A model generated the notes under the pieces. That model made no database searches. It was given only the letters and a program-made list of their open reading frames with translations, and was not told the DNA's origin. From Macrostomum hystrix (Eukaryota > Animalia > Platyhelminthes): a stretch of DNA of 64,000 nt. The position numbers and the translations under genes were made by a program. The stretch is from contig CATNEN010000033.1 in assembly GCA_950097015.1 (NCBI GenBank), forward strand, positions 4,526,001 to 4,590,000, written 5' to 3'. Of this stretch, positions 4,536 to 60,356 are shown one piece after another. Positions within the stretch are counted from its first letter, which is position 1; the number at the start of each line of letters is the position of its first letter.

Positions 4536-4789
4536 TCACCATTATAGATGTGATGGAGAAACGTATTGTTGAAATCTAGACATTTTAATTAGATTTATGG
4601 TCTTGTAGCTCGCACTGCACACTGTAAATATTGTGTTAAACGATTGCTGTGAGAAATACAAAAATGTGTTTATTTATATGAGCCGAAACTGTATTGTGTG
4701 TTGCATCACAGTAGGAATTATTTTATGCAGGAAATAATAACTCCAGCGTTACCGAAAACTTTCACGAAGTAACAAATTAGCCTCATTTG

Positions 4790-17675: not shown

Positions 17676-17954
17676 CCGATCATATAGCATATAGCAATTT
17701 TATTGTTACTTCGATAAACCAAGCTAGAGGTTGAATCGCTAAAGTCATAATGGCGCGTCCTATTTCTATACACAAATTATTTACTAATTATTTACACCTG
17801 TCCCAATCGGGCCAGACGGCAGCCGACAGCACTGCCGCAGCTATTGCGCGGCGCATCTGAAGGCTGCGTACGGCTTGTTTAGTCCATGGACTGGGAGACG
17901 CCCCACCCGCCGAATTACCCTAATTAATGGCAATGCAGAGTCAATGTCAACTGA

Positions 17955-31500: not shown

Positions 31501-31975
31501 TAGAGTGACAGTGTGGACTGATCGAGTGACTGTAGAGTGACAGTGTGAGCTGACCGAGTGACTGTAGAGTGACAGTGTGAGCTGACCGAGTGACTGTAGA
31601 GTGACAGTGTGGACTGAACGAGTGACTGTAGAGTGACAGTGTGAGCTGACCGAGTGACTGTAGAGTGACAGTGTGGACTGAACGAGTGACTGTTGAGTGA
31701 CAGTGTGGACTGAACGAGTGACTGTTGAGTGACAGTGTGAGCTGACCGAGTGACTGTAGAGTGACAGTATGGACTGAACGAGTGACTGCTGAGTGACAGT
31801 GTGGACTGAACGAGTGACTGTAGAGTGACAGTGTGAGCTGACCGAGTGACTGTAGAGTGACAGTGTGGACTGAACGAGTGACTGTAGAGTGACAGTGTGA
31901 GCTGACCGAGTGACTGTAGAGTGACAGTGTGAGCTGACCGAGTGACTGTAGAGTGACAGTGTGAGCTGACCGAGT
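28510..31975. repeat. 32-bp minisatellite, ~108 copies (GAGTGACTGTAGAGTGACAGTGTGGACTGAAC)
   Basis: Period 32; the translated pseudo-ORFs repeat every 32 aa (3 units). Confidence 0.98.
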
Positions 31976-32001
31976 GCCCGATGACGCAACGTTTCCATAA
32001 T

Positions 32002-35000: not shown

Positions 35001-38000
35001 TTCAAGAATGGATGGTGACAATCAGCCAAACTGTGAGAGTTTGCTGCAAAGCTTCTTCTATTGGTGTCTGCAACCGTCTCATGCATGGGAATCTGGCAGT
35101 GTTTAGCGGACACGGAGGGGGTGGAGCTAGGGCTGGGTAACATGCAATAATAATAAAGTGGCATAAAAAGCATCACTCGCTGCTATTCATAGCGATCGTT
35201 AGTTTTATTCATCAGGCAAAGCATTTTTATCTAGCCAAGTTCTCGCGGGCCAAACGTGAGCTCAGCCTGTTTTGCTGCGGAGCCCCGGCTTTGGCTGGTT
35301 AAAAAATAGATTTGCAAATGCAATTCCTGACTCTCCTTTTTACACTCACTTTTTGTGTTTCCCGTCTCCGCCCGCTGCCCGACTGTCCTCCGTGAAGACC
35401 CGGCAGCTCCGACTGTGGGCGCTTGGCGCAGTGAACCGTGACAAGCTCGGGAAATATGAGAGAAGCTCACTGCCAGCGAGGCAAAACATGTGAGACCACG
35501 GCCTGGAAGCCTCATCATTGTGCAGCTCACGAGAATGGGATTTAGAAGCAGAGCAGGGGGGTTAAATCCCCTTTGTCACCGGCCCGCCCTGGGAATGTGA
35601 AGCGACGGGCTCCCTGAAACTGTTGAAATGCTTCCCCTTAGAAACTGCCGTCACCAAGGGGGGCTGGCAAATGAGCCACGCCCGATATGGAGGGCGCTGT
35701 GTGAGTGTGTGAGTGTGTGAGTGTGTGTGTGAGTGTGTATGTGTGTGTATGTGTATGTGTATGTGTGTATGTGTGTATGTGTGTATGTGTATGTATGTGT
35801 GTATACTTTCACAACACAGCACTGTCCACTCATTGGACCCCATTGAATGTGTAGTATAGTATCGGATAAGTTATTTCTGTATCAATGTTCCACTGACAAT
35901 GCGTCTCATTGTCTCTCATTTGTTTGGACAGGCCATCCATCCAGCAAAGGCAATGACACAGAGGCATTGAGCACATCTTGAGCTGGCTTTGTATTGTGAG
36001 GCTGCAGGGTGGGTGATTATGATTTCCCAGCCTCCGCTTCTGACTCGCTCGATTATCTCAGAGACATGGAGGGGATTTCACACCTGCCTTCCGTGCACCT
36101 TCATTTTCGAAATCAATTTCTTTGTTCAGAAGAATCGGAATTTTCTGTAACATGAAAACATTGACTGAATAGGTTGCCGGGCTGCTGCTGCTGCTGTTGC
36201 TTCTGGAACCCATGCAAAGGAGCCTTGGCCTCACTGCTCCGCCTCTGCCCCTCTACCTCCTTCTCCGAGCCTTCCCTCCTCGCTTTCTGTATCCCTTCAG
36301 TTCCGTTACATTATTCCTATCTTCCTCGAATTATCCTACCTGTCACACCTCTCTCACCATCTGTCACACCTCTGTCCTCATCTGTCACACCTCTGTCCTC
36401 ATCTGTCACACCTCTGTCCTCATCTGTCACACCTCTGTCCTCATCTGTCACACCTCTGTCCTCATCTGTCATACCTCTCTCACAATCAGTCACACCTCTG
36501 TCCTCATCTGTCACACCTCTCTCACCATCAGTCACACCTCTGTCCTCATCTGCCACACCTCTCTCTCATCATCTGTCATACCTCTCTCCTCATCTGTCAC
36601 ACCTCTCTCCTCATCTGTCACACCTCTCTCCTCATCTGTCACACCTCTGTCCTCATCTGTCACACCTCTGTCCTCATCTGTCACACCTCTGTCCTCATCT
36701 GTCACACCTCTGTCCTCATCTGTCACACCTCTGTCCTCATCTGTCACACCTCTCTCCTCATCTGTCACACCTCTGTCCTCATCTGTCATACCTCTCTCAC
36801 AATCAGTCACACCTCTGTCCTCATCTGTCACACCTCTCTCACCATCAGTCACACCTCTGTCCTCATCTGTCACACCTCTCTCTCATCATCTGTCATACCT
36901 CTCTCATCATCTGTCATACCTCTCTCCTCATCTGTCACACCTCTGTCCTCATCTGTCACACCTCTCTCTTCTCATCTGTCACACCTCTCTCTCATCATCT
37001 GTCACACCTCTCTCCTCATCTGTCACACCTCTGTCCTCATCTGTCACACCTCTCTCTCACCATCTGTCACACCCCTCTCACCATCTGTCATACCTCTCTC
37101 TCCTCATCTGTCACACCTCTCTCTCATCATCTGTCATACCTCTCTCTCACTATCTGTCACACCTCTCTCGCCATCTGTCATACCTCTCCCACCATCTGTC
37201 ACACCTCTCTCATCTCATCTGTCACACCTCTCTAATCTCATCTGTCACACCTCTCTCTCATCATCTGTCACACCTCTCTAATCTCATCTGTCACACCTCT
37301 CTCTGATCATCTGTCACACCTCTATAATCTCATCTGTCAAACCTCTCTCTCATCATCTGTCACACCTCTCTAATCTCATCTGTCACACCTCTCTCTCATC
37401 ATCTGTCACACCTCTCTCTCATCATCTGTCACACCTCTCTCTCATCATCTGTCACACCTCTCTCTCATCATCTGTCACACCTCTCTCATCTCATCTGTCA
37501 CACCTCTCTCTCATCATCTGCCACACCTCTCTCTCACACCTCTCTCTCATCATCTGTCACACCTCTCTAATCTCATCTGTCACACCTCTCTCTCATCATC
37601 TGTCACACCTCTCTCATCTCATCTGTCACACCTCTCTAATCTCATCTGTCACACCTCTCTAATCTCATCTGTCACACCTCTCTCTCATCATCTGTCACTC
37701 CTCTCTAATCTCATCTGTCACACCTCTCTAATCTCATCTGTCACACCTCTCTAATCTCATCTGTCACACCTCTCTCTCATCATCTGTCACACCTCTCTAA
37801 TCTCATCTGTCACACCTCTCTCTCATCATCTGCCACACCTCTCTAATCTCATCTGTCACACCTCTCTCTCATCATCTGTCACACCTCTCTAATCTCATCT
37901 GTCACACCTCTCTCTCATCATCTGCCACACCTCTCTAATCTCATCTGTCACACCTCTCTCTCATCATCTGCCACACCTCTCTCTCACACCTTTCTCATCA

Positions 38001-41000
38001 AATGTCACACCTATCTCGTCTCATCAGTCATACCTCTATCTCCTCATCTGTCACACCTCTCTCCTCATCTGTCACACCTCTCTCCTCATCTGTCACACCT
38101 CTGTCCTCATCTGTCACACCTCTGTCCTCATCTGTCACACCTCTGTCCTCATCTGTCACACCTCTCTCCTCATCTGTCACACCTCTGTCCTCATCTGTCA
38201 TACCTCTCTCACAGTCAGTCACACCTCTGTCCTCATCTGTCACACCTCTCTCACCATCAGTCACACCTCTGTCCTCATCTGTCACACCTCTCTCTCATCA
38301 TCTGTCATACCTCTCTCCTCATCTGTCACACCTCTGTCCTCATCTGTCACACCTCTCTCTTCTCATCTGTCACACCTCTCTCTCATCATCTGTCACACCT
38401 CTCTCCTCATCTGTCACACCTCTCTAATCTCATCTGTCACACCTCTCTCTCACCATCTGTCACACCCCTCTCATTATCTGTCATACCTCTCTCTCCTCAT
38501 CTGTCACACCTCTCTCGCCATCTGTCATACCTCTCCCACCATCTGTCACACCTCTCTCATCTCATCTGTCACACCTCTCTAATCTCATCTGTCACACCTC
38601 TCTAATCTCATCTGTCACACCTCTCTCTCATCATCTGTCACTCCTCTCTAATCTCATCTGTCACACCTCTCTCTCATCATCTGCCACACCTCTCTCATCT
38701 CATCTGTCACACCTCTCTCTCATCATCTGCCACACCTCTCTCTCACACCTCTCTCTCATCATCTGTCACTCCTCTCTAATCTCATCTGTCACACCTCTCT
38801 AATCTCATCTGTCACACCTCTCTAATCTCATCTGTCACACCTTTCTCTCATCATCTGTCACACCTCTCTAATCTCATCTGTCACACCTCTCTCTCATCAT
38901 CTGCCACACCTCTCTAATCTCATCTGTCACACCTCTCTCTCATCATCTGTCACACCTCTCTAATCTCATCTGTCACACCTCTCTCTCATCATCTGCCACA
39001 CCTCTCTAATCTCATCTGTCACACCTCTCTCTCATCATCTGCCACACCTCTCTCTCACACCTTTCTCATCAAATGTCACACCTATCTCGTCTCATCAGTC
39101 ATACCTCTATCTCCTCATCTGTCACACCTCTCTCCTCATCTGTCACACCTCTCTCCTCATCTGTCACACCTCTGTCCTCATCTGTCACACCTCTGTCCTC
39201 ATCTGTCACACCTCTGTCCTCACCTGTCACACCTCTCTCCTCATCAGTCACACCTCTGTCCTCATCTGTCACACCTCTCTCACCATCAGTCACACATCTG
39301 TCCTCATCTGTCACACCTCTCTCTCATCATCTGTCATACCTCTCTCCTCATCTGTCACACCTCTGTCCTCATCTGTCACACCTCTCTCTTCTCATCTGTC
39401 ACACCTCTCTCTCATCATCTGTCACACCTCTCTCCTCATCTGTCACACCTCTCTAATCTCATCTGTCACACCTCTCTCTCACCATCTGTCACACCCCTCT
39501 CATTATCTGTCATACCTCTCTCTCCTCATCTGTCACACCTCTCTCGCCATCTGTCATACCTCTCCCACCATCTGTCACACCTCTCTCATCTCATCTGTCA
39601 CACCTCTCTAATCTCATCTGTCACACCTCTCTCTCATCATCTGTCACACCTCTCTAATCTCATCTGTCACACCTCTCTCATCTCATCTGTCACACCTCTC
39701 TAATCTCATCTGTCACACCTCTCTCTCATCATCTGTCACACCTCTCTAATCTCATCTGTCACACCTCTCTCTCATCATCTGCCACACCTCTCTAATCTCA
39801 TCTGTCACACCTCTCTCTCATCATCTGTCACACCTCTCTAATCTCATCTGTCACACCTCTCTCTCATCATCTGTCACACCTCTCTAATCTCATCTGTCAC
39901 ACCTCTCTCTCATCATCTGTCACACCTCTCTAATCTCATCTGTCACACCTCTCTCTCATCATCTGTCACACCTCTCTAATCTCATCTGTCACACCTCTCT
40001 CTCATCATCTGCCACACCTCTCTCATCTCATCTGTCACACCTCTCTCTCATCATCTGCCACACCTCTCTCTCACACCTCTCTCTCATCATCTGTCACACC
40101 TCTCTAATCTCATCTGTCACACCTCTCTCTCATCATCTGTCACACCTCTCTAATCTCATCTGTCACACCTCTCTAATCTCATCTGTCACACCTCTCTCTC
40201 ATCATCTGTCACACCTCTCTAATCTCATATGTCACACCTCTCTCTCATCATCTGCCACACCTCTCTAATCTCATCTGTCACACCTCTCTCTCATCATCTG
40301 TCACACCTCTCTCATCTCATCTGTCATACCTCTCTCTCATCATCTGTCACACCTCTCTAATCTCATCTGTCACACCTCTCTCTCATCATCTGTCACACCT
40401 TTCTAATCTCATCTGTCACACCTCTCTCTCATCATCTGTCACACCTCTCTAATCTCATCTGTCACACCTCTCTCTCATCATCTGCCACACCTCTCTCATC
40501 TCATCTGTCACACCTCTCTCTCATCATCTGCCACACCTCTCTCTCACACCTCTCTCTCATCATCTGTCACACCTCTCTAATCTCATCTGTCACACCTCTC
40601 TCTCATTATCTGTCACACCTCTCTAATCTCATCTGTCACACCTCTCTCTCATCATCTGCCACACCTCTCTAATCTCATCTGTCACACCTCTCTCTCATCA
40701 TCTGCCACACCTCTCTCTCACACCTTTCTCATCAAATGTCACACCTCTCTCGTCTCATCAGTCATACCTCTATCTCCTCATCTGCCACGCCTCTCTCATC
40801 ATGTCACACCTTTCTCATCAAATGTCATACCTTTTCGCTGAAATATTTTTCTCTGCTCCTATCTGTTACACCTTGACTGACAACCGGCAGCCCTAGATTT
40901 AGAAGGCCAACCGAAGCCTTGATAGCATCAGTCCAGGTTTGGATAAGCTTGACCTAAAGAATAATGGCGTGAAGATCCAGTGGAAAACCTACCTGCCTGC

Positions 41001-41394: not shown

Positions 41395-42875
41395 TCTAAT
41401 GAACTGCAGAATCTAATGAACTGCAGAGGCTATGAACTGCAGAGTCTAATGAACTGCAGAATCTAATGAACTGCAGAGTCTAATGAACTGCAGAATCTAA
41501 TGAACTGCAGAATCTAATGAACTGCAGAATCTAATGAACTGCAGAATCTAATGAACTGCAGAATCTAATGAACTGCAGAGTCTAATGAACTGCAGAGTAT
41601 AATGAACTGCAGAATCTAATGAACTGCAGAGTCTAATGAACTGCAGAATCTAATGAACTGCAGAGTCTAATGAACTGCAGAATCTAATGAACTGCAGAAT
41701 CTAATGAACTGCAGAGTCTAATGAACTGCAGAATCTAATGAACTGCAAAATCTAATGAACTGCAGAATCTAATGAACTGCAGAATCGAATAAACTGCAGA
41801 ATCTAATCAACTGCAGAGTCTAATGAACTGCAGAGTCTAATGAACTGCAGAATCTAATGAACTGCAGAATCTAATGAACTGCAGAATCTAATCAACTGCA
41901 GAGTCTAATGAACTGCAGAATCTAATGAACTGCAGAATCTAATGAACTGCAGAGTCTAATGAACTGCAGAGTATAATGAACTGCAGAATCTAATGAACTG
42001 CAGAGTCTAATGAACTGCAGAATCTAATCAACTGCAGAGTCTAATGAACTGCAGAATCTAATGAACTGCAGAATCTAATGAACTGCAGAGTCTAATGAAC
42101 TGCAGAATCTAATGAACTGCAAAATCTAATGAACTGCAGAATCTAATGAACTGCAGAATCGAATAAACTGCAGAATCTAATCAACTGCAGAGTCTAATGA
42201 ACTGCAGAGTCTAATGAACTGCAGAGTCTTATGAACTGCAGAATCTAATGAACTGCAGAATCTAATGAACTGCAGAATCTAATCAACTGCAGAGTCTAAT
42301 GAACTGCAGAATCTAATGAACTGCAGAGTCTAATGAACTGCAGAGTCTAATGAACTGCAGAGTCTAATGAACTGCAGAATCTAATGAACTGCAGAGTCTA
42401 ATGAACTGCAGAGTCTAATGAACTGCAGAGTCTAATGAACTGCAGAATCTAATGAACTGCAGAATCTAATGAACTGCAGAGTCTAATGAACTGCAGAGTC
42501 TAATGAACTGCAGAGTCTAATGAACTGCAGAATCTAATGAACTGCAGAGTCTAATGAACTGCAGAGTCTAATGAACTGCAGAGTATAATGAACTGCAGAG
42601 TCTAATGAACTGCAGAATCTAATGAACTGCAGAATCTAATGAACTGCAGAATCGAATGAACTGCAGAATCTAATCAACTGCAGAGTCTAATGAACTGCAG
42701 AGTCTTATGAACTGCAGAGTCTAATGAACTGCAGAATCTAATGAACTGCAGAATCTAATGAACTGCAGAGTCTAATGAACTGCAGAGTCTAATGAACTGC
42801 AGAGTCTAATGAACTGCAGAATCTAATGAACTGCAGAGTCTAATGAACTGCAGAGTCTAATGAACTGCAGAGTCT
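41395..42875. repeat. 17-bp minisatellite x~87 (ATCTAATGAACTGCAGA)
   Basis: GAACTGCAGA at 41401 and 41418 (period 17). Confidence 0.98.
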
Positions 42876-43504
42876 ACAGTGAATGACAGGACAGTGTCAA
42901 TAGAAATGATATATTCCGAAGTAGTCCTAAAAACTAATGAACAGTGGAGCCTGAAGTGCAGGCAATTCCTCCAACAAAAGTCCGTATTAGGCTGCTTGGG
43001 GACTCTCGCTCGAGTTGCTGATTTATTCCCGAGCTGCTCCGGGCAGCAGATAAGGCGGCCAGGTCTTCAAGCCAGTGATTTACCGCCTGGTCACCTTGCT
43101 CCTACCTTTGGCTCGCGAGCGCTTCTTCTAGATGGGGGGAGAGACGAGTCCGGAATTTAATTTCCCCCTATACCAATGGCATTAGGCAAAATCCCCGAAG
43201 CTTCCTTCATCGACCTGAAATTCTGAAAGCTCTTTGCCCTCTCTCTTTGTCTGTCACTGCAGCCTCTCGTTGAGTCCGGTTGTTGCTGTTCAGCGTGAGC
43301 AAACAGGCCGACAAAGAATGAAAGGCATTTTATAAACTAATCAAGAATTATGAATGCCTCTTCAAGAGCGGCCCGTGGGCCAAAATACAGACTCCAAATT
43401 TCAAGGGCCAAATCTTCCATCTTGAAGTGGGGAATGAAAAATTTCCTGCGTTTATTTACTTTTTTTCTGGGGACTAGATGTACACTTAAAACTAAGAACT
43501 CTTA

Positions 43505-45050
43505 CTGCAATTCTGAGTACATCTGTTGTTGCGATTCTGAGTACATCTGTTGCTGCGATTCTGAGTACATCTGTTGTTGCGATTCTGAGTACATCTGTTG
43601 CTGCGATTCTGAGTACATCTGTTGCTGCGATTCTGAGTACATCTGTTGTTGCGATTCTGAGTACATCTGTTGCTGCGATTCTGAGTACATCTGTTGCTGC
43701 GATTCTGAGTACATCTGTTGCTGCGATTCTGAGTACATCTGTTGCTGCGATTCTGAGTACATCTGTTGCTGCGATTCTGAGTACATCTGTTGCTGCGATT
43801 CTGAGTACATCTGTTGCTGCGATTCTGAGTACATCAGTTGTTGCGATTCTGAGTACATCTGTTGCTGCGATTCTGAGTACATCTGTTGCTGCGATTCTGA
43901 GTACATCAGTTGTTGCGATTCTGAGTACATCTGTTGCTGCGATTCTGAGTACATCTGTTGCTGCGATTCTGAGTACATCTGTTGCTGCGATTCTGAATAC
44001 ATCTGTTGCTGCGATTCTGAGTACATCTGTTGCTGCGATTCTGAGTACATATGTTGCTGCGATTCTGAGTACATCTGTTGCTGCGATTCTGAGTACATCT
44101 GTTGCTGCGATTCTGAGTACATCTGTTGCTGCGATTCTGAGTACATCTGTTGCTGCGATTCTGAGTACATCTGTTGCTGCGATTCTGAGTACATATGTTG
44201 CTGCGATTCTGAGTACATCTGTTGTTGCGATTCTGAGTACATCTGTTGCTGCGATTCTGAGTACATCTGTTGCTGCGATTCTGAGTACATCTGTTGCTGC
44301 GATTCTGAGTACATCTGTTGCTGCGATTCTGAGTACATCTGTTGCTGCGATTCTGAGTACATCTGTTGCTGCGATTCTGAGTACATCTGTTGCTGCGATT
44401 CTGAGTACATCTGTTGCTGCGATTCTGAGTACATCTGTTGCTGCGATTCTGAGTACATCTGTTGCTGCGATTCTGAGTACATCTGTTGCTGCGATTCTGA
44501 GTACATCTGTTGCTGCGATTCTGAGTACATCAGTTGTTGCGATTCTGAGTACATCTGTTGCTGCGATTCTGAGTACATCTGTTGCTGCGATTCTGAGTAC
44601 ATCAGTTGTTGCGATTCTGAGTACATCTGTTGCTGCGATTCTGAGTACATCTGTTGCTGCGATTCTGAGTACATCTGTTGCTGCGATTCTGAATACATCT
44701 GTTGCTGCGATTCTGAGTACATCTGTTGCTGCGATTCTGAGTACATCAGTTGTTGCGATTCTGAGTACATCTGTTGCTGCGATTCTGAGTACATCTGTTG
44801 CTGCGATTCTGAGTACATCTGTTGCTGCGATTCTGAGTACATCTGTTGCTGCGATTCTGAGTACATCTGTTGTTGCAATTCTGAGTACATCAGTTGTTGC
44901 AATTCTGAGTACATCTGTTGCTGCGATTCTGAGTACATCTGTTGTTGCAATTCTGAGTACATCTGTTGCTGCGATTCTGAGTACATCTGTTGTTGCGATT
45001 CTGAGTACATCTGTTGCTGCGATTCTGAGTACATCTGTTGCTGCGATTCT
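43505..45050. repeat. 24-bp minisatellite x~64 (TGCGATTCTGAGTACATCTGTTGC)
   Basis: Period 24; yields CCCDSEYI (+) and MYSESQQQ (-) pseudo-ORFs. Confidence 0.98.
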
Positions 45051-45393: not shown

Positions 45394-48342
45394 CTAGTTC
45401 AGAGCAGGCAGGGAGGTCACGGAATTCTTGGCGCCGTGGTCCGGCGCCTCCTCGGACAGTCGCGGCCAGCGCCAGTCGATGCGATACGGCGGCGTTAGAG
45501 CTCGGCTCCGGATGCGACCCTGCCGAGCCTCCCAGCTGTCGCAGCCGGCGAACAGGGGGCTGTCAGCGAAGCAGCGGTGGCTCAGCACCTCGCGACCCCC
45601 GCTGCGGTAGCCAAGCCGCTCCGGTATGCTCGGCCTGAGCAGCTGCACAACCAGGTCGACAAACCCCGGCGAAAGCTGCTGCTGGCGGCTGTCGCAGGCG
45701 TTGGCCAACACGCGGACCAGCTGCTCTCGGTCAGCCAGCAAGCCCGCCGGCGGGTAGCGGCCAGTCCTCAGAGCGAACAGGCTCGCGCCCAGGCCGAACC
45801 AGTCCACCGTCGAGTTCATGTGGCGCGACATGCCGCCGCCACGGCCGCGGAAGGCCTCAGTCAGCTCTGGCGGCCACCAGCCGGCATCGCGCAATGCGAA
45901 CTGGCCAAAGTCTTCGCGAAACTTTCTCGGCACTCGCAGCCAGGCGGAGCGGCGAGCCGCCGTCGAGCTGCGGCTTACTGACGACGCCTCCAGGGGCAGA
46001 CGCTTGGACAAGCCGAAGTCGTGGAGCAGCAGGTTGCCCTGCGCGTCCAGCAGCACATTCTCTGGGTGCAGGTCGCAATGCAGGACGCCGCAGTCGTGGA
46101 GGGCCGTCAGGGCCTCTGTCAGCTGTGCGGCCCAGAACAGCAGGAAACTCTCCGGGATGAAGCGAAGTCGGCGATCGCCGCTGGCGCGAATGTGGCGAGC
46201 CGCGGCGGCCAGGTCGCTAGGACAGAGCCGGTAGACTTCCAGGCTGTGCTGGCTGGACCAGGCAATCATTAGGCTGATGCCGGGGGAGCCGGAGTCCTGG
46301 ACATTCGGGAACGGATCGTTAAAGAGTATAGAATTGCTACAATAGCTGTTGTACTCGTAGTATGCTATTACGCTCTTGGCTGCTAATCCATTTCGGGCCT
46401 ATCTGGCGGGAACGCTCCCTTTTTTGCTCCCCGGGCCCGAAGCTGATTGGCTGGCTCTCCTGATCCCCCTTTCCCTTTTCTCTCAGCTCTGCGTGGCTTT
46501 GCTCCACCCCATTTGTTACGCCAATCAACTATTAGCAGCTTTGCCCTCCTCCCCCCTCCCCGACCCAGCCGCGCGCGGATTGGCTGATGAGTTTTTTATC
46601 TCTCCAACTCTCCCTCTCGCCCCTAGCCGTGGCCAATTTCGCGCTTTCTCTCGAATTAATCGCATCTACTACACAAGCTGAATTTGTTTGTTCTTCTAGG
46701 CGACATTACAGCCCGTAGCTGAATTATTTCAATAAAAGCAAGCTTTCTAGCATTGCTTTTAGGTTTTTTCGAAGCTACATACGCGATGTGTGTGGCCGCA
46801 ATTATTTGGTGCTGAGAAATCAGTGACTCATTCCTTACTGGCCTACTGATGGTGAGTAGACAGTATTGCAAATTATTTCTTGCATTCTTGATCCACAGCC
46901 AAGTGTATCTATGCCAGCAGTAACATTAAAGTGCAGGTTCTGCCACTCATGGCCACCCACCTGTCAGTGACACTGAGCCTGTCAAATTTAATTGCTAAGC
47001 TGAATTTCATCATGGGATGTAAAGCCTGGGTGAGCAGCATTCCCCTATGCTCACCCAGAAAGCTAAAAACCAACAGATCTTCTGACATGCATCTAGTCAG
47101 CTCTGTTATTTACTCAAACGCCTTACAATTCTCACAGTCTGTATCCAACCGTTGCCAAGAAAGCACTAAGATTGCACTTTCAAAGAAGAATGAACGAGGC
47201 CCAAGGCTCTGTTGAGGCTGCATCGGGTTGGAGAGTGGTGGAATTTGAGATGCGAATTTCAGACCCCACAAACTCAAGTATTGATCTGACCGGGTAGCGC
47301 TTTCACCTGCTGGCACGTGGCCTGCTTATTGACATTATTGACATGAGCTTGGGTGACTCTTTGAGAAATACTCTCGGTCCGCTGCGCCGCTGCCTAGCTT
47401 CATCGTAACAAAAGGACTTCCCAAGGGCTAATCGATGGGCATTACGACTCAGACTTATCGCTGTTATTTCTAAGAAAATAACAAACTTTCACCTTCAGCA
47501 CTTCCAGCGCCCGCCTGGCCTTCCTGAAAGCTTTCTGCGCGGCTTCGTGGTTCATTGATGCTCTCGGCAGTTTCACCGCCACCAGCTCCGCTCCGTTGTC
47601 CAGCCCGGCCTGGCTCTCGCCGGTCTTGCCTAAGCCGGACATCAGCTCACGGAGCTCCGCCAGCACAGCCGTCCGGTCTCTCGACGGCGCGACCTCCTCC
47701 AGCCGATTGTCCTCGTCCTCGTTGTCGCCAAGACTCGTTGTTCGCGGTCGCCGCACCGCCAGGAGGATGTCGGCGTAGCCTCCTGACTGCAGCAGCATGG
47801 AGCATTGGCAAACGCAGTCGCTGGTTGTAGCACGCAGCTCGCGCTCAAGCCACCGAGGCGGCCGGTCACCATTTCTTGGAAGCCGCAGCTGCACCGGAAT
47901 ACTCTGGACTGCATCGATCGCCGTGACAACGGTTTCCATGGAGACTGAGTAAGTCAAGCAGCGTCTGGTCGATGGGATGGCGGTGAGGGAGCGTGGCCCC
48001 TGCACAGGGTGCGGCATCGTCGAGGAAGCCTTCGATGCCATCAATGTCGGACCAAATTCAGTCTGTGAAGCAGAAGTCAGGAAACTCGGGCAAATTTTTT
48101 GACTCGTAGCGCTCAACACTGGAATAAATCTAGATTCACCTGACTACCTTGAGGGGCTGAGTCACTGGTGTCGCCACCGCAATCAGCGCCTCCGCTGCCG
48201 CATCTTTCGCTGCAGCCTCTGGCCTGCTGGAAGACAATGACGATGGAGACCGGCGGAGATGTCGTCGGCGTCCGCGAGATCGCGCCGTCCGACAGCGGCC
48301 TCTCGACTTTGCCGGCGTGTCTTGGGTTGTTGAAGTTGCCAT
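45394..48342 (-). CDS. Atypical AGC-group Ser/Thr kinase or pseudokinase, ~589 aa. Exons 48342-48148, 48062-47493, 46398-45394
   Basis: QSGGYA (I), LVAVK (II), HCDLHPEN (VIb), DFG, WPPE (VIII), DWFGLG (IX), RLGY..GGREVLSHRCF (XI) and an AGC-tail-like LTPPY. All three exons are phase 0. Confidence 0.85.
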
Positions 48343-50065
48343 TTATGCAGAATCGTCGAATGCTACCTCAGTCCAGGCGGCATTCTTTGTTCTTCGTTTA
48401 AGTCGCAACGTTGTCGGATTGACGGCGCGTTGAAGTAGGCAGTATTGCCAGACTTTGATTAGCGAATGCCCGCTGAGTTAGCAAATTGGCGGTCCGCTAT
48501 GGAGTTGAGCTGAGCAGCTCAGGGTATTGTGCTTGCTGGGCCCAGTCCATAGCCTGCTGAAGATTTGGGCCAGCCCAGCCTTCTGTGTACACGGAGAAGG
48601 AATCAACAGCTTTGCAGCCCCCCGCCCTGCCACAAGCCTCTAATATTTTTCGTAGGGTTTTGGAAGAGTGTGAGCCGGGCAACCAGAGCTCTTCCTAAAA
48701 CTGCTCCTGTCTCCCAGCTGCCGCTCCCCTCACACTTCCCAGTGGCTGTCCCTCCCTACCCCCCTCCCGGGCTGCACAGGTTGGAGATCCCTTTTTTGTT
48801 CTGGCACTCGGATCCCCGCTTCTGCCCTGAAAGGCTGAAAGAGACACAGAAGATGGGCACAAGACGGAGAGGCAGTGGTGGAAGATTAGGCCTAAAAAAC
48901 TCCCTAAAAAGCCGCCAACGCCTCCCACTGGCCTCCTAATGTATTCTCTCTGTCTCCTCACGGCCTCTTTTTCAGCGGGGAATCGTCAGGCGGCCTCATC
49001 CTGCCCCATCCTGCTCGCTTTTGAGTCCCATCCCACATGAGTCCAATGGCAGCTTAGCCAGTTTCAACAAATCTAAGAAATATTTTTTATTTCCGTTTCC
49101 AGTCTCGATAGAAGCTCATTTTAACTGTTGCTAGGGACTCGAAATTGGCAACAAAAATGAAGCCGGTTTGCTTTCTTTGCTGTTTTTATTCAAACAGATC
49201 TTTCTCAGCAAGGCTGCTGCAGCGAAGCCAATGCTTTGCCTCATTTTACCGATAAACTCACTGGCTGCAGCAGCTGGGTGAAAATGGCAAAGCACGAGTT
49301 CTTTTATTTTCCTGCCTCGACAATGCCAAGGACGAGCAGCGCGAGACGCATCGCCGCCGACGTTCAGCATATTCAAAAGCGACGACAGAGCAGAGCAGAG
49401 CATGAGTAGACGGAAGGAAAAGTACTGAAGCACAGCTGGAGACACTTTTAGGGTTTCTGGTTAAGAAGCATGGATAAGCCAGAGCAGGCAAAGCTTAGCG
49501 AATCCACAGTGAGACAGTCAGGCGGCATTGGGAAGGGGAACCAGACTCACTGCCTCAGATTCTTGGTCTTGCCAGTGTGCTCAACTTCTCAGGTTGGGAG
49601 TAGCATAAGTTAGCCGCGCCGAAGAGTTCAAGCTGCTAAAGAGCTGTACACAAAGATGTGTTATTCAATGGATTGACTGCTTAAAATATATGCTTATTCC
49701 GTACTCTGCTCAACAAAATGTAAAACAGCAATAAAATTAGAAATACGAACTATGAAGACTTTGTGAGCTAAAATTAAAATCGGACGCCGGCACATGTAAA
49801 ATGTAGGCTATATGAGGTGACCCGTGCTCCTGAATCACGAATTTCGCGCGAATGAGCTGATGACAAAAAGCTGAAAATTGTTTGTAGAAAAAGGCAACAG
49901 CTGACCTCAACAGGTGCTAGAGTGAGTGGGTGAATGAATGAGCTTTGATCTTGCAGGCAAAACTGTTACTGCAAGGCATTACTGAGGCAGCTGTTGCACA
50001 TGACGAATGCGCTGCCATCACCAGTAGACCCGCTTAGCAGACAAGTTCGAGAAGGTCGTCTGTTC

Positions 50066-53000
50066 TCAAAGGCCGCAGCTGTTGTAGCAGTCAGCCAGGT
50101 TAGCGAAGTAGTTCTGGTTTCGGCTGCAACCAAAGTTTATCATGAACTTGCACTGGTTCTGGCGCTTGCTGTAAAAGTACCCTCGGCTCAAGAGGCCGCT
50201 CTGGCTGTGACCGCAGTAGCCGCTATCATTCGGCAGCTCGCAGTGTGGTGGCAGCTGAGCGGGGTTGATGTAGGCTGGAAGTTTTGGTTGCTGCTGTTCA
50301 ACTGGCCACCGAGTTTGCACTTTTGTTCCCGACAAAACACTTCAACCGATTCAAACTCACTTGGCGCCGAATCAAACGTCGGCAGATTGACGTCGATGCC
50401 GGTGTAGCGACACATGGCTGCGGGCGGTTGGCAGAACAGCTCGATGTCTTCCTTAGCCCTATCCGCCCGCTCCTCCGGGCTGGATATGAAGCTATACATC
50501 TGCAGAATTCTGTTTTTGCACTCTGTGTCATTCAACAGGAAGCACTTGGACTGGTACAGAGAGTAGGGCTCGTCGCAGCGCACCGCCTTTCGGGACAAGG
50601 AAGATTCAAAGAAAGAGATTAGGCTGCCTAAGAGATTAGGTAGAAGATTATCGATTTCGTGGCAGAGTTTCGGCCTCACCTCGCACGGATTAAAGATGCG
50701 TCTGACGCAATAATTCTCGCAGTCGGCCAGCGAGTTGAACAGGTTGCCGTTGTTCAGCTGGCAGCCATAATGGGCGAACCACTTGCAGCGCATTTCCACC
50801 ATGTCGAATGTCCATTTCGAACGGCTAGATGAGCACTTCGGCTGATTGCGCCAATCTAGCTGGCGTTTGCACTTCTGCGGCAGCAGATCCGCCGAGTCCA
50901 CCGTCAGTGGCTGCCGGGTAGGCGGAGATGGCGCCTGTGTCATCAACGGCTGTGTCGCTGGCAGAGCTGAGGCCTGCCTCTGAAAACAAGTGAACAGTTG
51001 TTGACTCTTCCCTGCTAATCTGGCAACGATGTTTGAAGGCCTCGGAAGTCCTTTGAGACGTCCTTTGAATCGACATCAATAGTTTGCAAGTTTACTTACC
51101 GGGGCCGCTCCGGACTCGATTCTCCGAGCTACTGCTGCGGGACGAACAGAGCGTCTTATGGCCAGTGGAGCGATTCTTGAGTCTGGCGTAGTTGAGCTGG
51201 GCATTGGAGACGTCTGAAATATTTTTTCTCGGTCTTTTGTGCGAATCTGCTCGACCAAGCTTGAACACATGAGCGTTTTTTGTTCACTATTTGTCGGAAA
51301 ACTCGTCACTCTGAAGTTCAGTCACGCTTAAGGCCCTCATTTACTGTTGAAATTGCAGCACGTGGCTGTCACTCACCGGTTCTGGAATCCCAGCCACTTG
51401 CCGCATAAACTTCAAATTGTCCGCGGCCATCTCATCCTGGACTCTCTTGGGCAGCCATGCCGGTAGAATCTCCCAGTAATTTCGGGTCACATGCTCATAC
51501 GCTGGCACCTCTGTGGTCGTGGCCTAAATGCATGTAGGGGGTATGATTTTGCTAACCATTTTGCAGCATGCAAACTACTTTAAGTAGAGCGATGAAATAT
51601 ATCGTACCAAATCTCTATCAACGGACAGCCGGCGCGCCGACAGAACTTGATTTTCCAGCTGGAACTGGCGCCTAACCTCCGGGTGCAACCAGGCGGGCAG
51701 GACCTCCCAGTACATGCGGGTCACGTGTTCCGCTGGCGGCGCAGTCGTGGTCTTCAACTGGAAAGAGAGAATTATGCTCAGCATTTATTGAATTTGAATG
51801 AGCATTAGTTGCATTTTACCTGCCGCTGAATGTTGGCTACCCTGGCCAGGAACTCCTCATTGTCGCGCTGAATCTCGTTCCTGACCCTGCTCTGGAGCCA
51901 GCTCGGGTAGTGCTCCCAGTAGTCGCGGGTGACGTGCACTGCATCTGGCGCCTCGGTCGTGGGCGTCTTCAAAAGTTCGGGTTCGGGTTCGCTCTGTCCT
52001 CACTTTTCAGTAGTATTTTACCAAGCTACACGAGAATCATCTACTTCGTAAACAAAAAGCGCTACTGCAAAATCAGAGGGGACTCAAACTCACCGGCTTA
52101 GGCAGTCCGGCTCTTTGTCTGTTTTCATTGTTATCCAGCTCAAACTGCAGCCGCACCTCCGGGGGCAGCCATGCCGGCAGGTGGCGCGGGGACCAGTACT
52201 GCTTGGTCACGTGAGCCAACTCCGGTTCCGGCGTTGTTTGTGAGGCCTGGTTTGTTAAAATCGCAACAAAATGATTCTAAGATATTTTTGTGCCAGTTCT
52301 AAAATAACTTACGCTATAAGAATCTAGGTTTACACTAAATTACCATCACTGTAAGAAAAGTATAGAGGCAAAAAGTCGAACCATCCCTTACGAGTCTCTG
52401 CAGTTGCTCTTTGACAAGGCGCTTGTGCTCCGGACTGGCCTCTTGCACCTTACCGCGGCTGACAGGGCCCGCTGTAGTTGTTTTGGCTGCCGATGTGGCA
52501 GAAGATTCTGTGAAGGGCTGTATCGTCGTGTCAGGTATTTTAACACTGGATACTATCGTGTCAGCACTTGCATTTTCGGTGTTTGGGAGGTCAGCAGTTG
52601 AGGTCACAGCGACTGGCGTCTCGGCTGTTGTCTGGTCCTCATCGGTTGCCAGGAACCAGGCTTTTGAGCCACTGGCCAGAACGAGCTGGAATTGAGTACT
52701 CTGGGCTTGAGTTGCTCGTTGAGCGAAGTCAAGGACACTCAAAGTTGGTCAGCTGTTTTAGTATTCGAAGCACTGAAATGCTGAAGACTGGCAACCGCAA
52801 TCTACTAAATTCTGTATTGGGATTTCTATCCCGTACTGTACGCTCGTAAATAAGAAAATTTTCCGGAAGCAGCTGCAAAATGGTTTCCTAATTGGTCCTG
52901 GCCGCGCCCAGACAGTCCATCTATTAAAGTACATTCGTCTGGCAAAATTATACGAGCTTATATATTTATTTCTGTTTGATTGTTTTCTAGTTTCCAAGTG

Positions 53001-53075
53001 CGCACGTACTCGAGTTCAAGCACTCACCAGACAAGCCGCTAGCAGAGCCGCTGCCGCGACCCTCGATTGTTTCAT
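50066..53075 (-). CDS. Secreted 644-aa protein: signal peptide, Thr/Ser-rich stalk, 4x unrecognised ~50-aa module, Cys-rich linker, two Kunitz/BPTI domains. Exons 53075-53028, 52685-52392, 52246-52094, 51993-51820, 51757-51608, 51523-51377, 51213-51100, 50979-50361, 50301-50066
   Basis: Nine GT-AG exons total 1935 nt in frame. Signal peptide MKQSRVAAAALLAACL|LVLASGSKA. Kunitz 6-Cys patterns KCKRQ...PKC...RCKWFAHYGC..NGNLFNSLADCENYC and HCELPNDSGYC...QCKFMINFGC..NQNYFANLADCYNSC. Confidence 0.85.
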
Positions 53076-54309
53076 GGCGTGAGAACTCTGGTGTCGATTT
53101 CCGGGCCACCCTGGATGCGCCCTGGATGCGCAGCAGAATTTGGGCGGTTGGCAGAGCTCGAGTCGCACGGTACACAGGCTGTTGCTGCTCCGAGATGGGT
53201 CGATTGTCGAGGAAAGAAGCGGAGGCAAAATGCGGTGTTCGGAAGCCCTCGCAGATGTCGGGTATTATCGAGGTCACACCGCTAGAGTAAATAGGCAATC
53301 ATTGGAAAAGAAACCGCCCATACTGAGGTTCGAGCATCGCGCCATCTTTAAATGTTAGTCAGCCAGGGCAGAGGCAGAGAGAAGCGCAACTGGTTGGGGA
53401 GGGCGACTGTGTGTCTTCGGCTCGCAGCCTCCCCACCGCCGATCCTTTGGACGGTCCAATTAACTCTCAGCGAGGGGGTGGCGCGGCAAGGATGCTGGAA
53501 GTGAAAGCGGCTATAGAAGGCATTGCCTCATCAGTCACCGCCGCTGGGCGGGGCTCCGGCTGGCCTCTCTAACACCGCTAACGCGCGACTTGCTGAAGTG
53601 CCGCTCCGCGCTTAGTCAGGGGCTGACAAATGACCGCTGTCAAAAAAGTAGCTTCAGTCTAGTTAGTAGGCCTTCGAGGTCCAGAGAATAGGGGATGAAC
53701 CGGAGGTCCGCAGGGCTAGCGGGCAAACAGCGTATGTGAGGATCCACTTCCCGAAATTCTGGCTAAGAAAAAGCTATTCGCATTAACCTCGAAAATGCAT
53801 TTGCAGGCGGATCACAACAATCCCGTTGGATAACCTTCTAGCTCCAAAGCACAACAACAGATGATTCTTCCAGTTGCTAACGAATGCAGGCACCCAAAAT
53901 CCAGGGCCTGATCAGCAAGATATTTGCTACTGCAACTAGCCGAAAGTCTAAGAAAAGATGCAAGGAAAATCAAGGGTTCCAGGAGGAGTGTTGCAGCCTC
54001 GTGTATTAGATTTCATACATCTGCATTCTGTGCTGGGAACTAGTTAACATTTAACAACTAGTTCGTACTTTTTGCAATCTGTTTCAGTTTCCTCAATGAT
54101 TTACTCACTCGCTGACGTCACTGACAACGAATTTCAATCAAAAAGCGGTTGCAGAAAAGTTGCAAATCGTAAACCCTTCTCATGCGTAACTGGATAAGAC
54201 AAGGGAGATATGAGACAGGGGAGAGATAAGACAAGGGAGAGATGAGACAGGGGAGAGATGAGACGGGAGAGATGAGACGGGAGAGATGAGATAGCGGAGA
54301 AAAAAGACA

Positions 54310-57839: not shown

Positions 57840-58550
57840 TGGGGTTCACCTGCTGGGGTTCACCTGAAGGACTGAGGTTCACCTGAAGGACTGAGGTTCA
57901 CCTGAAGGACTGATGTTCACCTGAAGGACTGAGGTTCACCTGAATGACTGATGTTCACCTGAAGGACTGAGGTTCACCTGAAGGACTGATGTTCACCTGA
58001 AGGACTGAGGTTCCCCTGAAGGACTGAGGTTGGCCTGAAGGAATGAGGTTCACCTGAAGGACTGAGGTTCACCTGAAGGACTGAGGTTCACCTGAAGGAC
58101 TGAGGTTCCCCTGAAGGACTGAGGTTGGCCTGAAGGAATGAGGTTCACCTGAAGGACTGAGGTTCACCTGAAGGACTGAGGTTCACCTGAAGGACTGATG
58201 TTCACCTGAAGGACTGAGGTTCCCCTGAAGGACTGAGGTTGGCCTGAAGGAATGAGGTTCACCTGAAGGACTGAGGTTCACCTGAAGGACTAAGGTTCAC
58301 CTGAAGGACTGAGGTTCAACTGAAGGACTGAGGCTCACCTGAATGACTGATGTTCACCTGAAGGACTGATGTTCACCTGAATGACTGAGGTTCACCTGAA
58401 GTACTGAGGTTCATCTGAAGGACTGAGGTTCAACTGAAGGACTGAGGTTCACCTGAAGGACTGAGGTTCACCTGAAGGACTGAGGTTCACCTAAATGACT
58501 GAGGTTCACCTGAAGGACTGAGGTTCACCTGAAGGACTGAGGTTCACCCG
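57840..58550. repeat. 19-bp minisatellite x~37 (CTGAGGTTCACCTGAAGGA)
   Basis: TTCACC at 57859, 57878 and 57897. Confidence 0.97.
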
Positions 58551-59639
58551 ATGGATTGGGGATTATCTAAATAGCTGGGGTTCATCTGAAGGACTAAAGT
58601 TGATCTGCAGGTATGAGACCTATCTGTCACTCATTTGTTGTTACAGTAACACATTGGAAAGGCCAGACCATTGCGCACCATTTCAAACTGTTAGCAATGA
58701 AGCATGAACCTAGGCAAACAAATAAATTTTATAGAACGCGATGAGATTGACTGAAGCATATTTGCTCTGGCTGCAGGATGGAATGCAACTTGCTTTGCTT
58801 GAGGGCGGGAGAGGCAAACACTTGAGCACGCGGGCACCTAGACTAGAATGGGCTCAACCCTGCTGGGACAAAAAGTCGGTCAGGCTCGCAAAAAAATACA
58901 GGTAAGAAGTTGATATGAAATCATGACTTCAAAGCTCCTTGTATTTCAAATCGTGAATCGCAATGTCAAGATAAACGTTTCCTGTCCACTCAACCTCTCT
59001 CCTCTGCGACTTAACTCAAGTTATCTCGCTAAAGTGCATTTGGAAACGATTTGAAACAGAAAACTAGTTCTCAAACTAGCTTTTAATGTTATCAAAACCG
59101 GCCTCTCATTCTTAGAATGCGCTCTCATTTTCTCACATGTTCTAGTCCTAGAAAATGCATTCAACGCTTTCTGTTTCGTAATTGCTTTCCCACGTATTTC
59201 AGTGGCCATTCTGCATTAGCGCCGGGCGTGGCTGCGAGCTTTGCCACTTTCACTTTCTGGGTCAGTTTCTTAGCGTATTTGTTCAGCGAAACACAAAGAA
59301 AGGCGAGCCATTGTCGGCAGCCTCAGTTGATACCGACGCACATAAAAAAGGGGCTCCAGCTAATTGATAATGCTGCCATTATCTCTAATTGCGTGTCCGG
59401 TTATCTAGGGCGTGTGACAGTACTGGGAAACAATCTTTCCATAGATTGTGTGGATTCTAAGTGTGGATTTTGTAGTATCTACAAGACGCTTTGTCAAACG
59501 CTTGTTCTTCAGATGCGCTTTGCGAGAATCGGCCGCTAATATTCGTAGAAAGGAATTTTTCCAGCAACTGCGGGAGACGGAAGAGGGACAGGGAGAGGGA
59601 CAGGGACGGGGAGAGGGAGAGGGGGAGAGGGAGAATCTT

Positions 59640-60120
59640 CGTGGGAGTATCTCGGAGGGAGTATCTCGAATGGACTATCTCGGAGGGAGAATCTGATCGG
59701 AGAGAGTACTCGGAGGGAGAATCTGATCGGAGGGAGTACTCGGAGGGAGAATCTGATCGGAGGGAGTACTCGGAGGGAGAATCTCGGAGGGAGTATCTCG
59801 GAGGGAGAATCTCGGAGGGAGTATCTCGGAGGGAGAATCTCGGAGGGAGAATCTCGGAGGGAGAATCTCGGAGGGAGTATCTCGGAGGGAGAATCTCGGA
59901 GGGAGTATCTCGGAGGGAGTATCTCGGAGGGAGTATCTCGGAGGGAGTATCTCGGAGGGAGTATCTCGGAGGGAGAATCTCGGAGGGAGTATCTCGGAGG
60001 GAGTACTTGGAGGGAGAATCTGATCGGAGGGAGAATCGGATTGGAGGGAGAATCGGATTGGAGGGAGTACTCTGAGGGAGAATCTGATTGGGGGGAGTAC
60101 TCGGAGGGAGAATCTCGGCC
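59640..60120. repeat. 14-bp purine-rich tandem repeat (GGAGGGAG[A/T]ATCTC) with variants
   Basis: Directly visible. Confidence 0.95.
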
Positions 60121-60356
60121 GGAGAACCTCGGAAACCTCAGGGAGTAGGCTAAACAACTGATAAAAATCTGCGTGAAAAATTACGAAACTCTGAGTAGAA
60201 AGTGGAACATTAAGTTTGCTTGCTCTTGTCTATAATTTGTCTATAATTTGTTTATAATTTCTTTCGTCCAAATCTAGACTGAGATATCAGAAAAGAGTCA
60301 GTTAAAAACACTAACAGCAACAGTAAACTTTCCAGGTCAGTACCGTCTCGCTCAGC

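Follow-up and report, generated by a model that had tools for sequence, protein, structure and literature searches.

The gene analysed here lies on the minus strand of a 64,000-nucleotide stretch of the Macrostomum hystrix genome (the window). It is a single-copy, expressed flatworm gene, and its product is a probably secreted protein of about 595 residues (the sum over its exons) with two Kunitz domains. N-terminal of these domains are four copies of a module that is a new, narrowly distributed and lineage-restricted domain without detectable relatives. The best explanation, to which we assign a probability of roughly 60%, is that this real, expressed gene carries a constrained four-module array, grown by exon duplication in place, which would hold the Kunitz pair as a putative multivalent binding or anchoring region. 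The module represents a sequence family that was not found in Pfam or in 1.84 billion database proteins and that selection has kept across two diverged Macrostomum species.

Structure of the gene and its transcript

The spliced RNA contigs of X4, X5 and X6 each span all ten exons of one transcript of about 2.9 kb with 9 introns, and X1, from a second study, gave a partial one. The 9-exon model of the earlier note is therefore replaced by ten exons (Table 1). All four module exons are present in this transcript, and their borders coincide exactly with joints in the contigs. Each of them is flanked by an AG acceptor and a GT donor, is in phase 0-0 and has a length divisible by three (147-153 nt), which bears out the earlier description of four consecutive symmetric exons with one copy each. 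The extent of copy 2 had to be corrected: it begins at 51966 (acceptor ...ttttgaAG/ACG, first residues TPTT), and the K that had been placed before it is intronic.

In the protein, a signal-peptide-like start is followed by an acidic Ser/Thr-rich stretch, the four modules, a basic linker, an atypical Kunitz domain, a Cys-containing linker domain and the second Kunitz domain. Exon 1, which is covered by contig pieces and joined to exon 2 at 52685/53028, encodes the beginning of a signal-peptide-like hydrophobic stretch; its M. lignano counterpart likewise ends ...ACL before gt. As read from the sequence, basic residues at the start run into a hydrophobic stretch over exons 1-2, and M. lignano keeps this pattern. 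Exon 2 completes the putative signal peptide; behind it come the conserved SKAWFLA(T/P)DE start, a middle that is acidic, rich in Thr and Ser and variable in length, and a helix-like end that is again conserved (KVQEASPEHKRLV...). The exon is 36% identical to its M. lignano counterpart, with conservation confined to both ends. Its last base is C in the assembly versus G in all of the RNA contigs, a synonymous Leu change. Searches were run on the individual exons, and Pfam scans gave no match for exon 2, exon 7 or exon 9. For exon 7 there was also no significant tblastn match within the M. lignano locus, and exon 9 is single copy in the genome. The 3' UTR of exon 10 extends below 49300, and contig pieces cover 49300-50274. 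A search of Rfam over the whole window gave no match, and ten further long ORFs in the window, many of which sit on minisatellites, had no Pfam match.

Table 1. Exons of the M. hystrix gene (positions in the window) and their counterparts at the M. lignano locus L007
Feature	Position	Strand	Coding length	Content and RNA joints	M. lignano counterpart
Exon 1	53028..53312	-	first 16 codons	5' UTR and CDS 53075-53028, MKQSRVAAAALLAACL; ends in phase 0	L007:5173-5220
Exon 2	52392..52685	-	98 codons	RNA joints	L007:5478-5669
Module copy 1	52094..52246	-	51 aa, 153 nt	Type A; 2-residue insertion after YW	L007:6285-6437; 60% identical, equal length, insertion after YW shared
Module copy 2	51820..51966	-	49 aa, 147 nt	Type B; RNA joints 51966/52094 and 51757/51820	L007:7690-7836; equal length
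Module copy 3	51608..51757	-	50 aa, 150 nt	Type A; RNA joints	L007:8761-8907
Module copy 4	51377..51523	-	49 aa, 147 nt	Type B; RNA joints	L007:9001-9150; 59% identical
Exon 7	51100..51213	-	38 codons	Basic Pro/Ser/Thr/Arg-rich linker, not conserved; RNA joints	
Exon 8	50680..50979	-	100 codons	Pro/Gln-rich linker, then Kunitz domain 1	
Exon 9	50361..50586	-	75 codons + 1 base	Cys-containing region between Kunitz domains; RNA joints	
Exon 10, coding part	50066..50274	-		Kunitz domain 2; stop codon 50068-50066; RNA joint 50274/50361	

Sequence and distribution of the module

Every copy of the module opens with a short Thr/Pro linker, T-T-x2-P, after which comes a core of about 35 residues that lacks Cys and has the motif H-V-T-(R/K)-x-(Y/H)-W ... 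P-x-W-(L/V) ... V-(R/K/Q)-x-(E/Q)-hydrophobic-x2-(D/E)-N. The linkers are probably O-glycosylated. Thirteen residues are invariant in all four copies, their codons differing at silent positions, and 9 residues, including His, Thr, Asn and two Trp, are invariant in all eight copies of this species and M. lignano. Three amino acids inside the modules differ in the RNA contigs from the assembly, namely Y>H (copy 1), R>S (copy 2) and, at the invariant Val of copy 4, V>L; some variation is therefore tolerated.

When the whole 220-Mb genome was searched in six frames with a four-copy profile, the four copies were recovered at E values of 6e-23 to 7e-27. Because the next best match had an E value of only 3.5, the four-copy signal is far beyond chance, and this search found no further copy elsewhere in the genome. 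In addition, no degenerate fifth module was detected in the introns, exon 2 or exon 7 of either species with an 8-sequence profile at E up to 50.

A Pfam-A scan of the four copies (E up to 1) yielded only two sub-threshold chance rows, at 12.8 bits versus cut-offs of 23-25, and hmmsearch with the module profile gave 0 matches among PDB sequences at E up to 10. Among 1.84 billion representative proteins, the profile matched just three, weakly, and all of them are unrelated repeat proteins. The earlier suggestion that the module lies outside the described families thus held in all three collections. At the level of structure, Foldseek against the PDB returned 0 matches for the module, a wide VIA-align search reached a best Z of 3.1 with no meaningful match, and the matches of an Atlas shape search (TM 0.49-0.59) were limited to short helices. 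An ESM-Atlas feature search with copy 3 gave low-recognition matches to tiny hypothetical proteins and was uninformative.

The orthologue in M. lignano

Using the 252-aa open frame across exons 8-9 as a query, we found that the orthologue is the M. lignano hypothetical protein BOX15_Mlig032897g2 (P0004), which shows 72% identity across both Kunitz exons and shares the exon order. The annotated model, of 223 aa, begins inside the Kunitz-1 exon, so that neither the putative signal peptide nor exon 2 nor any of the four modules is part of it. This truncation explains why searches of protein databases for the module came back blank, and it is the reason that the module was overlooked. Upstream of the model, both M. 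lignano loci contain exactly 4 modules of 60-69 bits each, with shared order and phases and near-identical exon lengths; they are known from the genome, as conserved open exons with splice sites. The presence of the same four copies in the same order in the sister species shows that the module is real and lineage-restricted. The blank database result partly reflects poor annotation, and unannotated copies like those of M. lignano could be hidden in other flatworms too. More generally, this gene shows that a protein-database result of no relatives can stem from truncated gene models. The M. lignano introns between the modules carry minisatellites.

The orthologous module copies are 46-60% identical. 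Ranked by exon, identity to M. lignano falls from 72% for the Kunitz exons to 53-66% for the modules, 49% for exon 9 and 36% for exon 2, and is undetectable for exon 7; this ranking argues that the modules are not drifting spacers.

Selection and growth of the array

The paralogous copies are 47-55% identical at the DNA level, and their silent sites are saturated, with pS of 0.67-0.77 versus pN of 0.36-0.49. For the orthologous module pairs the pooled dN/dS was 0.22, a rough value because the interspecies dS is near saturation. These substitution patterns indicate that selection acts on the protein sequence of the modules, in agreement with the earlier note, and that it has been purifying since the split from M. 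lignano.

In the tree, copies 1 and 3 were separated from copies 2 and 4 with support of 91/98, and the resulting A-B-A-B grouping suggests that a two-exon unit was probably duplicated. The exon-shuffled origin proposed in the earlier note was not supported: since the module is found in no other gene of the genome, the evidence favours in-place exon duplication rather than shuffling between genes. Most likely, the array grew by exon duplication in place, an A-B unit being copied once to give A-B-A-B, and this duplication would predate the divergence of the M. hystrix gene from the M. lignano gene.

Predicted structure of the module

Structure prediction for a single module, as the earlier note had suggested, gave an AF2 model without a fold match. 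Built from 8 sequences (pTM 0.46), the model has a pLDDT of 72-74, rising to about 84 over residues 21-40, and one continuous helix at residues 26-44. With moderate confidence, the module is thus modelled as an aromatic N-terminal strap and a 19-residue helix. The conserved helix residues fall at 140-300 degrees of the helical wheel, the opposite face being variable, and an invariant Asn lies mid-way along the hydrophobic stripe of the conserved face. The aromatic segment is predicted, again at moderate confidence, to lie against this face of the single amphipathic helix. When the four modules were co-folded as separate chains, the score was 0.00, which speaks neither for nor against self-association.

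Two atypical Kunitz domains

Both Kunitz domains exceeded the Pfam cut-off of 21 bits for PF00014 (domain 1, 34.3 bits; domain 2, 33.2 bits), and the M. lignano protein scored 57.7 bits over two stretches. Together with the signal-peptide-like start, these matches agree with the earlier reading of a secreted tandem-Kunitz protein. The Kunitz/BPTI cysteine spacing is C-8-C-15-C-7-C-12-C-3-C, and Kunitz domains that inhibit trypsin carry Lys or Arg directly after Cys2, at position P1. Each of the present domains has six Cys; the Cys1-Cys2 spacing of domain 1 is 11 residues instead of 8, the Cys2-Cys3 spacing of domain 2 is 19 (4 extra), and the remaining spacings are canonical. The reactive-loop region of domain 1 is invariant between the two species. 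At P1, domain 1 has Ser in both species and domain 2 has Gly in M. hystrix but Ser in M. lignano; neither domain therefore carries the Lys or Arg of the trypsin-inhibiting subclass. Given the altered loop lengths and the Ser or Gly at P1, classical trypsin inhibition by either domain is doubtful. Literature searches on Kunitz and protease inhibitors in Macrostomum and on the gene id Mlig032897 found nothing about the present gene; the literature matches to 'trypsin inhibitor' in Macrostomum concern TIL domains of adhesion protein 2.

Possible roles of the module array

In the explanation that we favour, each module would be a mini-domain, and the four are predicted to be strung like beads. The architecture and conservation of the gene suggest that these beads may together form a multivalent region for extracellular binding or anchoring; through it, the conserved Kunitz pair would be attached to a matrix, a glycan or a partner protein in the secretion to which the gene contributes. 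A more specific proposal, offered tentatively and as an improbable one, is that the module is a new extracellular mini-domain that lacks Cys and folds independently, its aromatic strap and single helix packing around a buried polar cluster of His, Thr and Asn, that it is confined to Macrostomum or Macrostomorpha, and that it serves as a multivalent glycan or matrix binder targeting the atypical Kunitz pair in a reproductive or adhesive secretion.

The modules might instead be stiff glycosylated beads of a stalk that projects the Kunitz pair from a surface or gel without specific binding, their conservation maintaining a small fold only. Thr/Pro linkers do separate the cores, Ser/Thr-rich exons flank the array, and the Kunitz domains are the most conserved part of the gene (72% versus 53-66% for the modules). 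However, the nine residues invariant over eight copies despite silent-site saturation imply constraint above the usual need of a spacer, and the true spacer exons of the gene (exon 7 and the middle of exon 2) have diverged past recognition, which leads us to consider such a stalk unlikely. We regard as quite unlikely a role in assembly, in which self-association of the modules within or between molecules would make the protein polymerise, as a gel, plug, capsule or glue that the Kunitz domains guard against proteases. A hydrophobic stripe with an Asn recalls coiled-coil cores, so the conserved stripe of the amphipathic helix, broken by the invariant Asn, would suit this role, and the alternating A-B-A-B subtypes could pair; but the helix has only about 19 residues, and the core is where AF2 is already most confident when a module is modelled alone.

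It is very unlikely that the module is a far-diverged version of a known small helical domain (HTH-like, villin-headpiece-like or a polyproline-helix mini-fold) rather than a new family. The best database match, P0003, is a bacterial protein with an array of HTH repeats of about 50 residues (Pfam HTH_28/HTH_23 and others) that shares P-x-W-L-x-P-E-(I/V)-R at the start of a helix, or more loosely P-x-W-L-x2-E-(I/V)-R. In hhalign, the profile of the module copies aligned with that of the P0003 repeats over 29 columns at a probability of 83% (pairwise E 9e-6), and a designed PPII-helix miniprotein was found at Z 2.6. However, P0003 is a borderline match, singled out post hoc among 1.84e9 proteins because it scored best, and repetition inflates its E value of 4e-5. 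The alignment is limited to the first HTH helix (the first 29 of 50 columns of the bacterial unit), and the recognition helix T-V-x2-W-R-x-R-L-G has no counterpart in the module, which AF2 models as one continuous helix rather than a three-helix HTH unit; conversely, the bacterial unit lacks the H-V-T-x2-Y-W half and the invariant Asn. HTH units are intracellular bacterial DNA-binding elements, whereas the module is part of a probably secreted animal protein. Moreover, all of the structural matches had Z of 3.1 or below, Foldseek had none, and there was no Pfam HTH or VHP match at E up to 1. Finally, the window is full of minisatellites, the inter-module introns of M. lignano carry them too, and the modules could have been a coding by-product of such DNA or a chance repeat without function. 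This reading is refuted by the low DNA identity of the copies with their saturated silent sites, their 1:1 correspondence in a second species at a dN/dS of roughly 0.2, and the precise splicing and transcription of the module exons.

M. lignano is open to RNAi, in situ hybridisation and transgenesis by established methods, which makes the function of the module directly testable there. An extracellular fold of about 35 residues without disulfides would be of interest to protein scientists, provided that it folds by itself. Lineage-restricted repeats are common in secreted proteins, and the wider impact is thus likely to be modest, barring a striking function.

Comparison with known secreted proteins

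Multi-domain secreted Kunitz/BPTI proteins, such as papilin-type or mucin-linked ones, are known. Like them, the present protein has a signal-peptide-like start, two six-Cys Kunitz domains, Ser/Thr/Pro-rich linkers and accessory repeats N-terminal of the inhibitor domains; it differs in that these repeats belong to no described family and that the Kunitz loops are altered, with Ser or Gly instead of Lys or Arg after Cys2. Mucin-type PTS repeats can also be encoded by duplicated exons. The module array resembles them in having a Thr/Pro-rich segment per copy and symmetric exons, so that gain or loss of a copy leaves the reading frame intact. In contrast to PTS repeats, however, each module consists mostly of a conserved non-PTS core with aromatic and polar invariant residues, and the copies are old, diverged and not homogenised.

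The module repeat and its exons

On the minus strand between 52260 and 51370, all four peptide copies of the ~50-aa module (HVT-x2-YW, P-x-WL, (D/E)N) listed in an earlier note could be read from the sequence. Each copy is preceded by an AG acceptor, is followed by a GT donor and has a length divisible by three. The position and content of the copies therefore stand, whereas the boundary of copy 2 had to be moved to a start at 51966, which makes all of the module exons 147-153 nt long. A six-frame search of the 220-Mb assembly with the four-copy profile recovered the four exons (E 6e-23 to 7e-27), and the next best match in the whole assembly was at E 3.5, revealing no further copies. Thus, the repeat is genuine, far outside what chance would give, and restricted to one gene.

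In a protein alignment of the four copies, 13 columns are invariant and pairwise identity is 39-46%; DNA identity is ~47-55% over aligned codons. The codons of the invariant residues differ at silent positions, in support of the claim that selection acts at the protein level.

Transcription and structure of the gene

Of seven sequencing runs from two studies, four were compared with positions 49300-53400. In three runs (X4, X5 and X6), one contig each of ~2.8-2.9 kb skipped nine stretches of this region, whose ends were CT..AC on the plus strand, that is, GT..AG on the minus strand. Three partial contigs of X1, from the other study, showed identical joints. Because the runs are small (42-48 million letters of contigs) and exons alone are covered, they can only be RNA. 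The joints define ten exons (table), rather than the nine proposed earlier, while transcription of the module exons was borne out. Summed over the exons, the predicted protein has ~595 codons, and every exon up to exon 8 is in phase 0-0.

At the joint of exon 2 and copy 1, the last base of exon 2 (52392, minus strand) is C in the assembly and G in every RNA contig of both studies. This change is synonymous (Leu) and yields a canonical G|GT donor; the C of the assembly may be the minority allele or base call. Within the modules, the RNA contigs carry three amino acid differences: copy 1 has Y>H and copy 2 R>S, and in copy 4 the invariant Val is replaced by Leu (V>L). The modules clearly tolerate some variation, three differences being too few for a test.

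By inspection, the N-terminus, encoded by exon 1 and continued into the first part of exon 2, is basic and then hydrophobic, of signal-peptide type. The acidic, Ser/Thr-rich remainder of exon 2 is followed by the four modules, a basic Pro/Ser/Thr/Arg linker (exon 7) and two Kunitz domains, in exons 8 and 10 (34 and 33 bits; Pfam cut-off 21). Exon 9, between them, contains Cys residues, is single-copy in the genome and was assigned to no Pfam family. Both Kunitz domains keep the six Cys and have lengthened loops. Trypsin inhibitors of the BPTI type carry Lys or Arg after Cys2, whereas the residue is Ser in the first domain and Gly in the second.

Features of the Kunitz gene, its M. lignano orthologue and their surroundings (identity to M. 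lignano from tblastn of the single exons against its locus)
Feature	Position	Strand	Identity to M. lignano	Basis or remark
Exon 1	53028-~53312	minus		RNA contigs
Exon 2	52392-52685	minus	36%, conserved at its two ends only	RNA contigs
Exon 3, module copy 1	52094-52246	minus	modules, 53-66% over cores	RNA contigs
Exon 4, module copy 2	51820-51966	minus	as copy 1	RNA contigs
Exon 5, module copy 3	51608-51757	minus	as copy 1	RNA contigs
Exon 6, module copy 4	51377-51523	minus	as copy 1	RNA contigs
Exon 7	51100-51213	minus	not detectable	RNA contigs
Exon 8	50680-50979	minus	Kunitz exons, 72%	RNA contigs
Exon 9	50361-50586	minus	49%	RNA contigs
Exon 10	<49300-50274	minus	as exon 8	RNA contigs; stop codon 50066-50068
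M. lignano signal-peptide exon	L007:5173-5220	same as model		splice sites intact
M. lignano exon 2	L007:~5478-5669	same as model		splice sites intact
M. lignano modules	L007:6285-9150	same as model		splice sites intact
M. lignano module 1 exon	L007:6285-6437	gene's		AG/GT borders, phase 0-0, 153 nt (window 153)
M. lignano module 2 exon	L007:7690-7836	gene's		AG/GT borders, phase 0-0, 147 nt (window 147)
M. lignano module 3 exon	L007:8761-8907	gene's		AG/GT borders, phase 0-0, 147 nt (window 150)
M. lignano module 4 exon	L007:9001-9150	gene's		AG/GT borders, phase 0-0, 150 nt (window 147)
BOX15_Mlig032897g2	L007:10001-11796; L008:10001-11655			public model, GCA_002269645.1
Minisatellites, window	554-1074, 3598-4140, 4787-5214, 17101-17677, 25459-26136, 28511-31976, 32507-33895, 36340-40717, 41395-42876, 43505-45050, 57853-58595, 59627-60133
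Protein-kinase open frame	45394-46269	minus		Pfam Pkinase E 3e-18

Search for relatives of the module

In Pfam, no copy had a match at E up to 1 except for two chance rows (12.8 bits), and a profile search of PDB sequences gave none at E up to 10. When 1.84 billion representative proteins were searched exhaustively with the profile, three were returned (E 1.6e-6 to 3.8e-5) and nothing below E 1e-10. All three are highly repetitive, and two resemble translated repeats. These spurious matches leave the module as unrecognised as had been claimed, and literature searches found no paper on the gene.

The third protein, P0003, is an unusual bacterial all-helix-turn-helix protein of 891 aa, with at least 10 tandem units of ~50 residues, each starting P-x-W-L-T-P-E-I-R. 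Profile-profile comparison aligned its repeats with 29 module columns around P-x-W-L-x2-E-(I/V)-R (probability 83%, pairwise E 9e-6, P0003 having been picked after the fact). It was rejected as a relative on account of this selection and because the alignment includes neither the recognition helix nor any of the H-V-T/Y-W half. On these alignments, the likeness is treated as resemblance at the motif level; the short motif aside, P0003 is unrelated to the module.

The M. lignano orthologue and the origin of the array

The open frame across exons 8-9 had a single protein match, M. lignano BOX15_Mlig032897g2 (223 aa, 50% identity overall), which starts within the Kunitz-1 exon. The 72% identity of the Kunitz exons to M. 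lignano fits the placement of the window in Macrostomum. Both of its genomic places (L007 and L008) were searched in six frames with 10 kb of flank; in each of them, the module profile detected four modules and no more, all upstream and on the same strand as the gene (60-69 bits). With an eight-sequence profile, the M. lignano modules scored 83-88 bits, and no fifth copy was found in either species. The public model is truncated at its 5' end, which explains why the modules are missing from protein databases; against the four-copy profile, the M. lignano modules would have scored far above the three spurious matches.

The M. lignano inter-module introns are packed with short tandem repeats (L007:6480-7450 and L007:8371-8740), the cause of their length (~1.2 kb and ~0.9 kb); the corresponding introns of the window measure 127 nt and 62 nt. 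One array, of 18-nt type, translates into a peptide repeat on the opposite strand, and another, of 12 nt and directly upstream of module 3, reads (DRQT)n in frame.

The best M. lignano match of each copy was the copy of the same rank (60, 46, 48 and 59% identity for copies 1-4); the four-copy array is therefore older than the split of the two species. Pooled orthologous copies gave a pS of 0.63, a pN of 0.25 and a dN/dS of ~0.22, a rough value because dS is near saturation; among paralogous copies, pS was saturated (0.67-0.77), pN was 0.36-0.49 and dN/dS was not estimable. In the maximum likelihood tree of the eight copies, copies 1 and 3 were separated from copies 2 and 4 (support 91/98). The best explanation of this A-B-A-B pattern of sequences is that a unit of two exons was duplicated, and since the module was found in only one gene of the 220 Mb, the exon shuffling proposed earlier gives way to duplication in place.

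Predicted structure and possible role

AlphaFold2 was run on a single module, first with 4 aligned sequences and then with 8; mean pLDDT was 72 and 74, respectively, and pTM 0.44-0.46, with the best confidence (~84) at residues 21-40. The model has one helix (residues 26-44), and the H-V-T-R-x-Y-W segment forms two short turns. On a helical wheel, the conserved V28, R29, E/Q31, hydrophobic 32, D/E35, N36 and hydrophobic 39 and 43 all lie within 140-300 degrees, defining a hydrophobic stripe with the invariant Asn at its centre, and the opposite face is variable. The module is thus predicted to be a small strap-plus-helix unit, with Thr/Pro linkers between units. Foldseek found no structural neighbour, VIA-align none that was meaningful (best Z 3.1), and Atlas matches were short helices only.

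The gene is transcribed and conserved in at least two species of Macrostomum, and its product is a secreted-looking double-Kunitz protein whose N-terminal half contains four old, selectively maintained module copies without detectable relatives. These results support the earlier reading, in which a secreted tandem-Kunitz protein carries a new module and selection acts on that module at the protein level: the module is a new lineage-restricted domain inside a familiar kind of protein. We infer that the array may provide the Kunitz pair with a multivalent region for binding or anchoring. The modelled conserved face would fit a binding face, or one that packs against the invariant aromatic/polar N-terminal segment. 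The array might instead be a passive structured stalk; the ranking of exons by conservation marks the modules as constrained units, unlike true linkers. Another reading is that of a self-assembly element, and co-folding of four modules gave no verdict for or against association. The presence of the orthologue in the experimentally tractable M. lignano adds to the interest of the module.

Minisatellites are unusually dense in the window (periods 14-38 nt, up to ~200 copies). GC skew is extreme in several of these arrays, and several generate spurious long ORFs in every frame, among them those of 1,100-1,200 aa at 28391-32033. The protein-kinase open frame lies ~3 kb downstream of the Kunitz gene.
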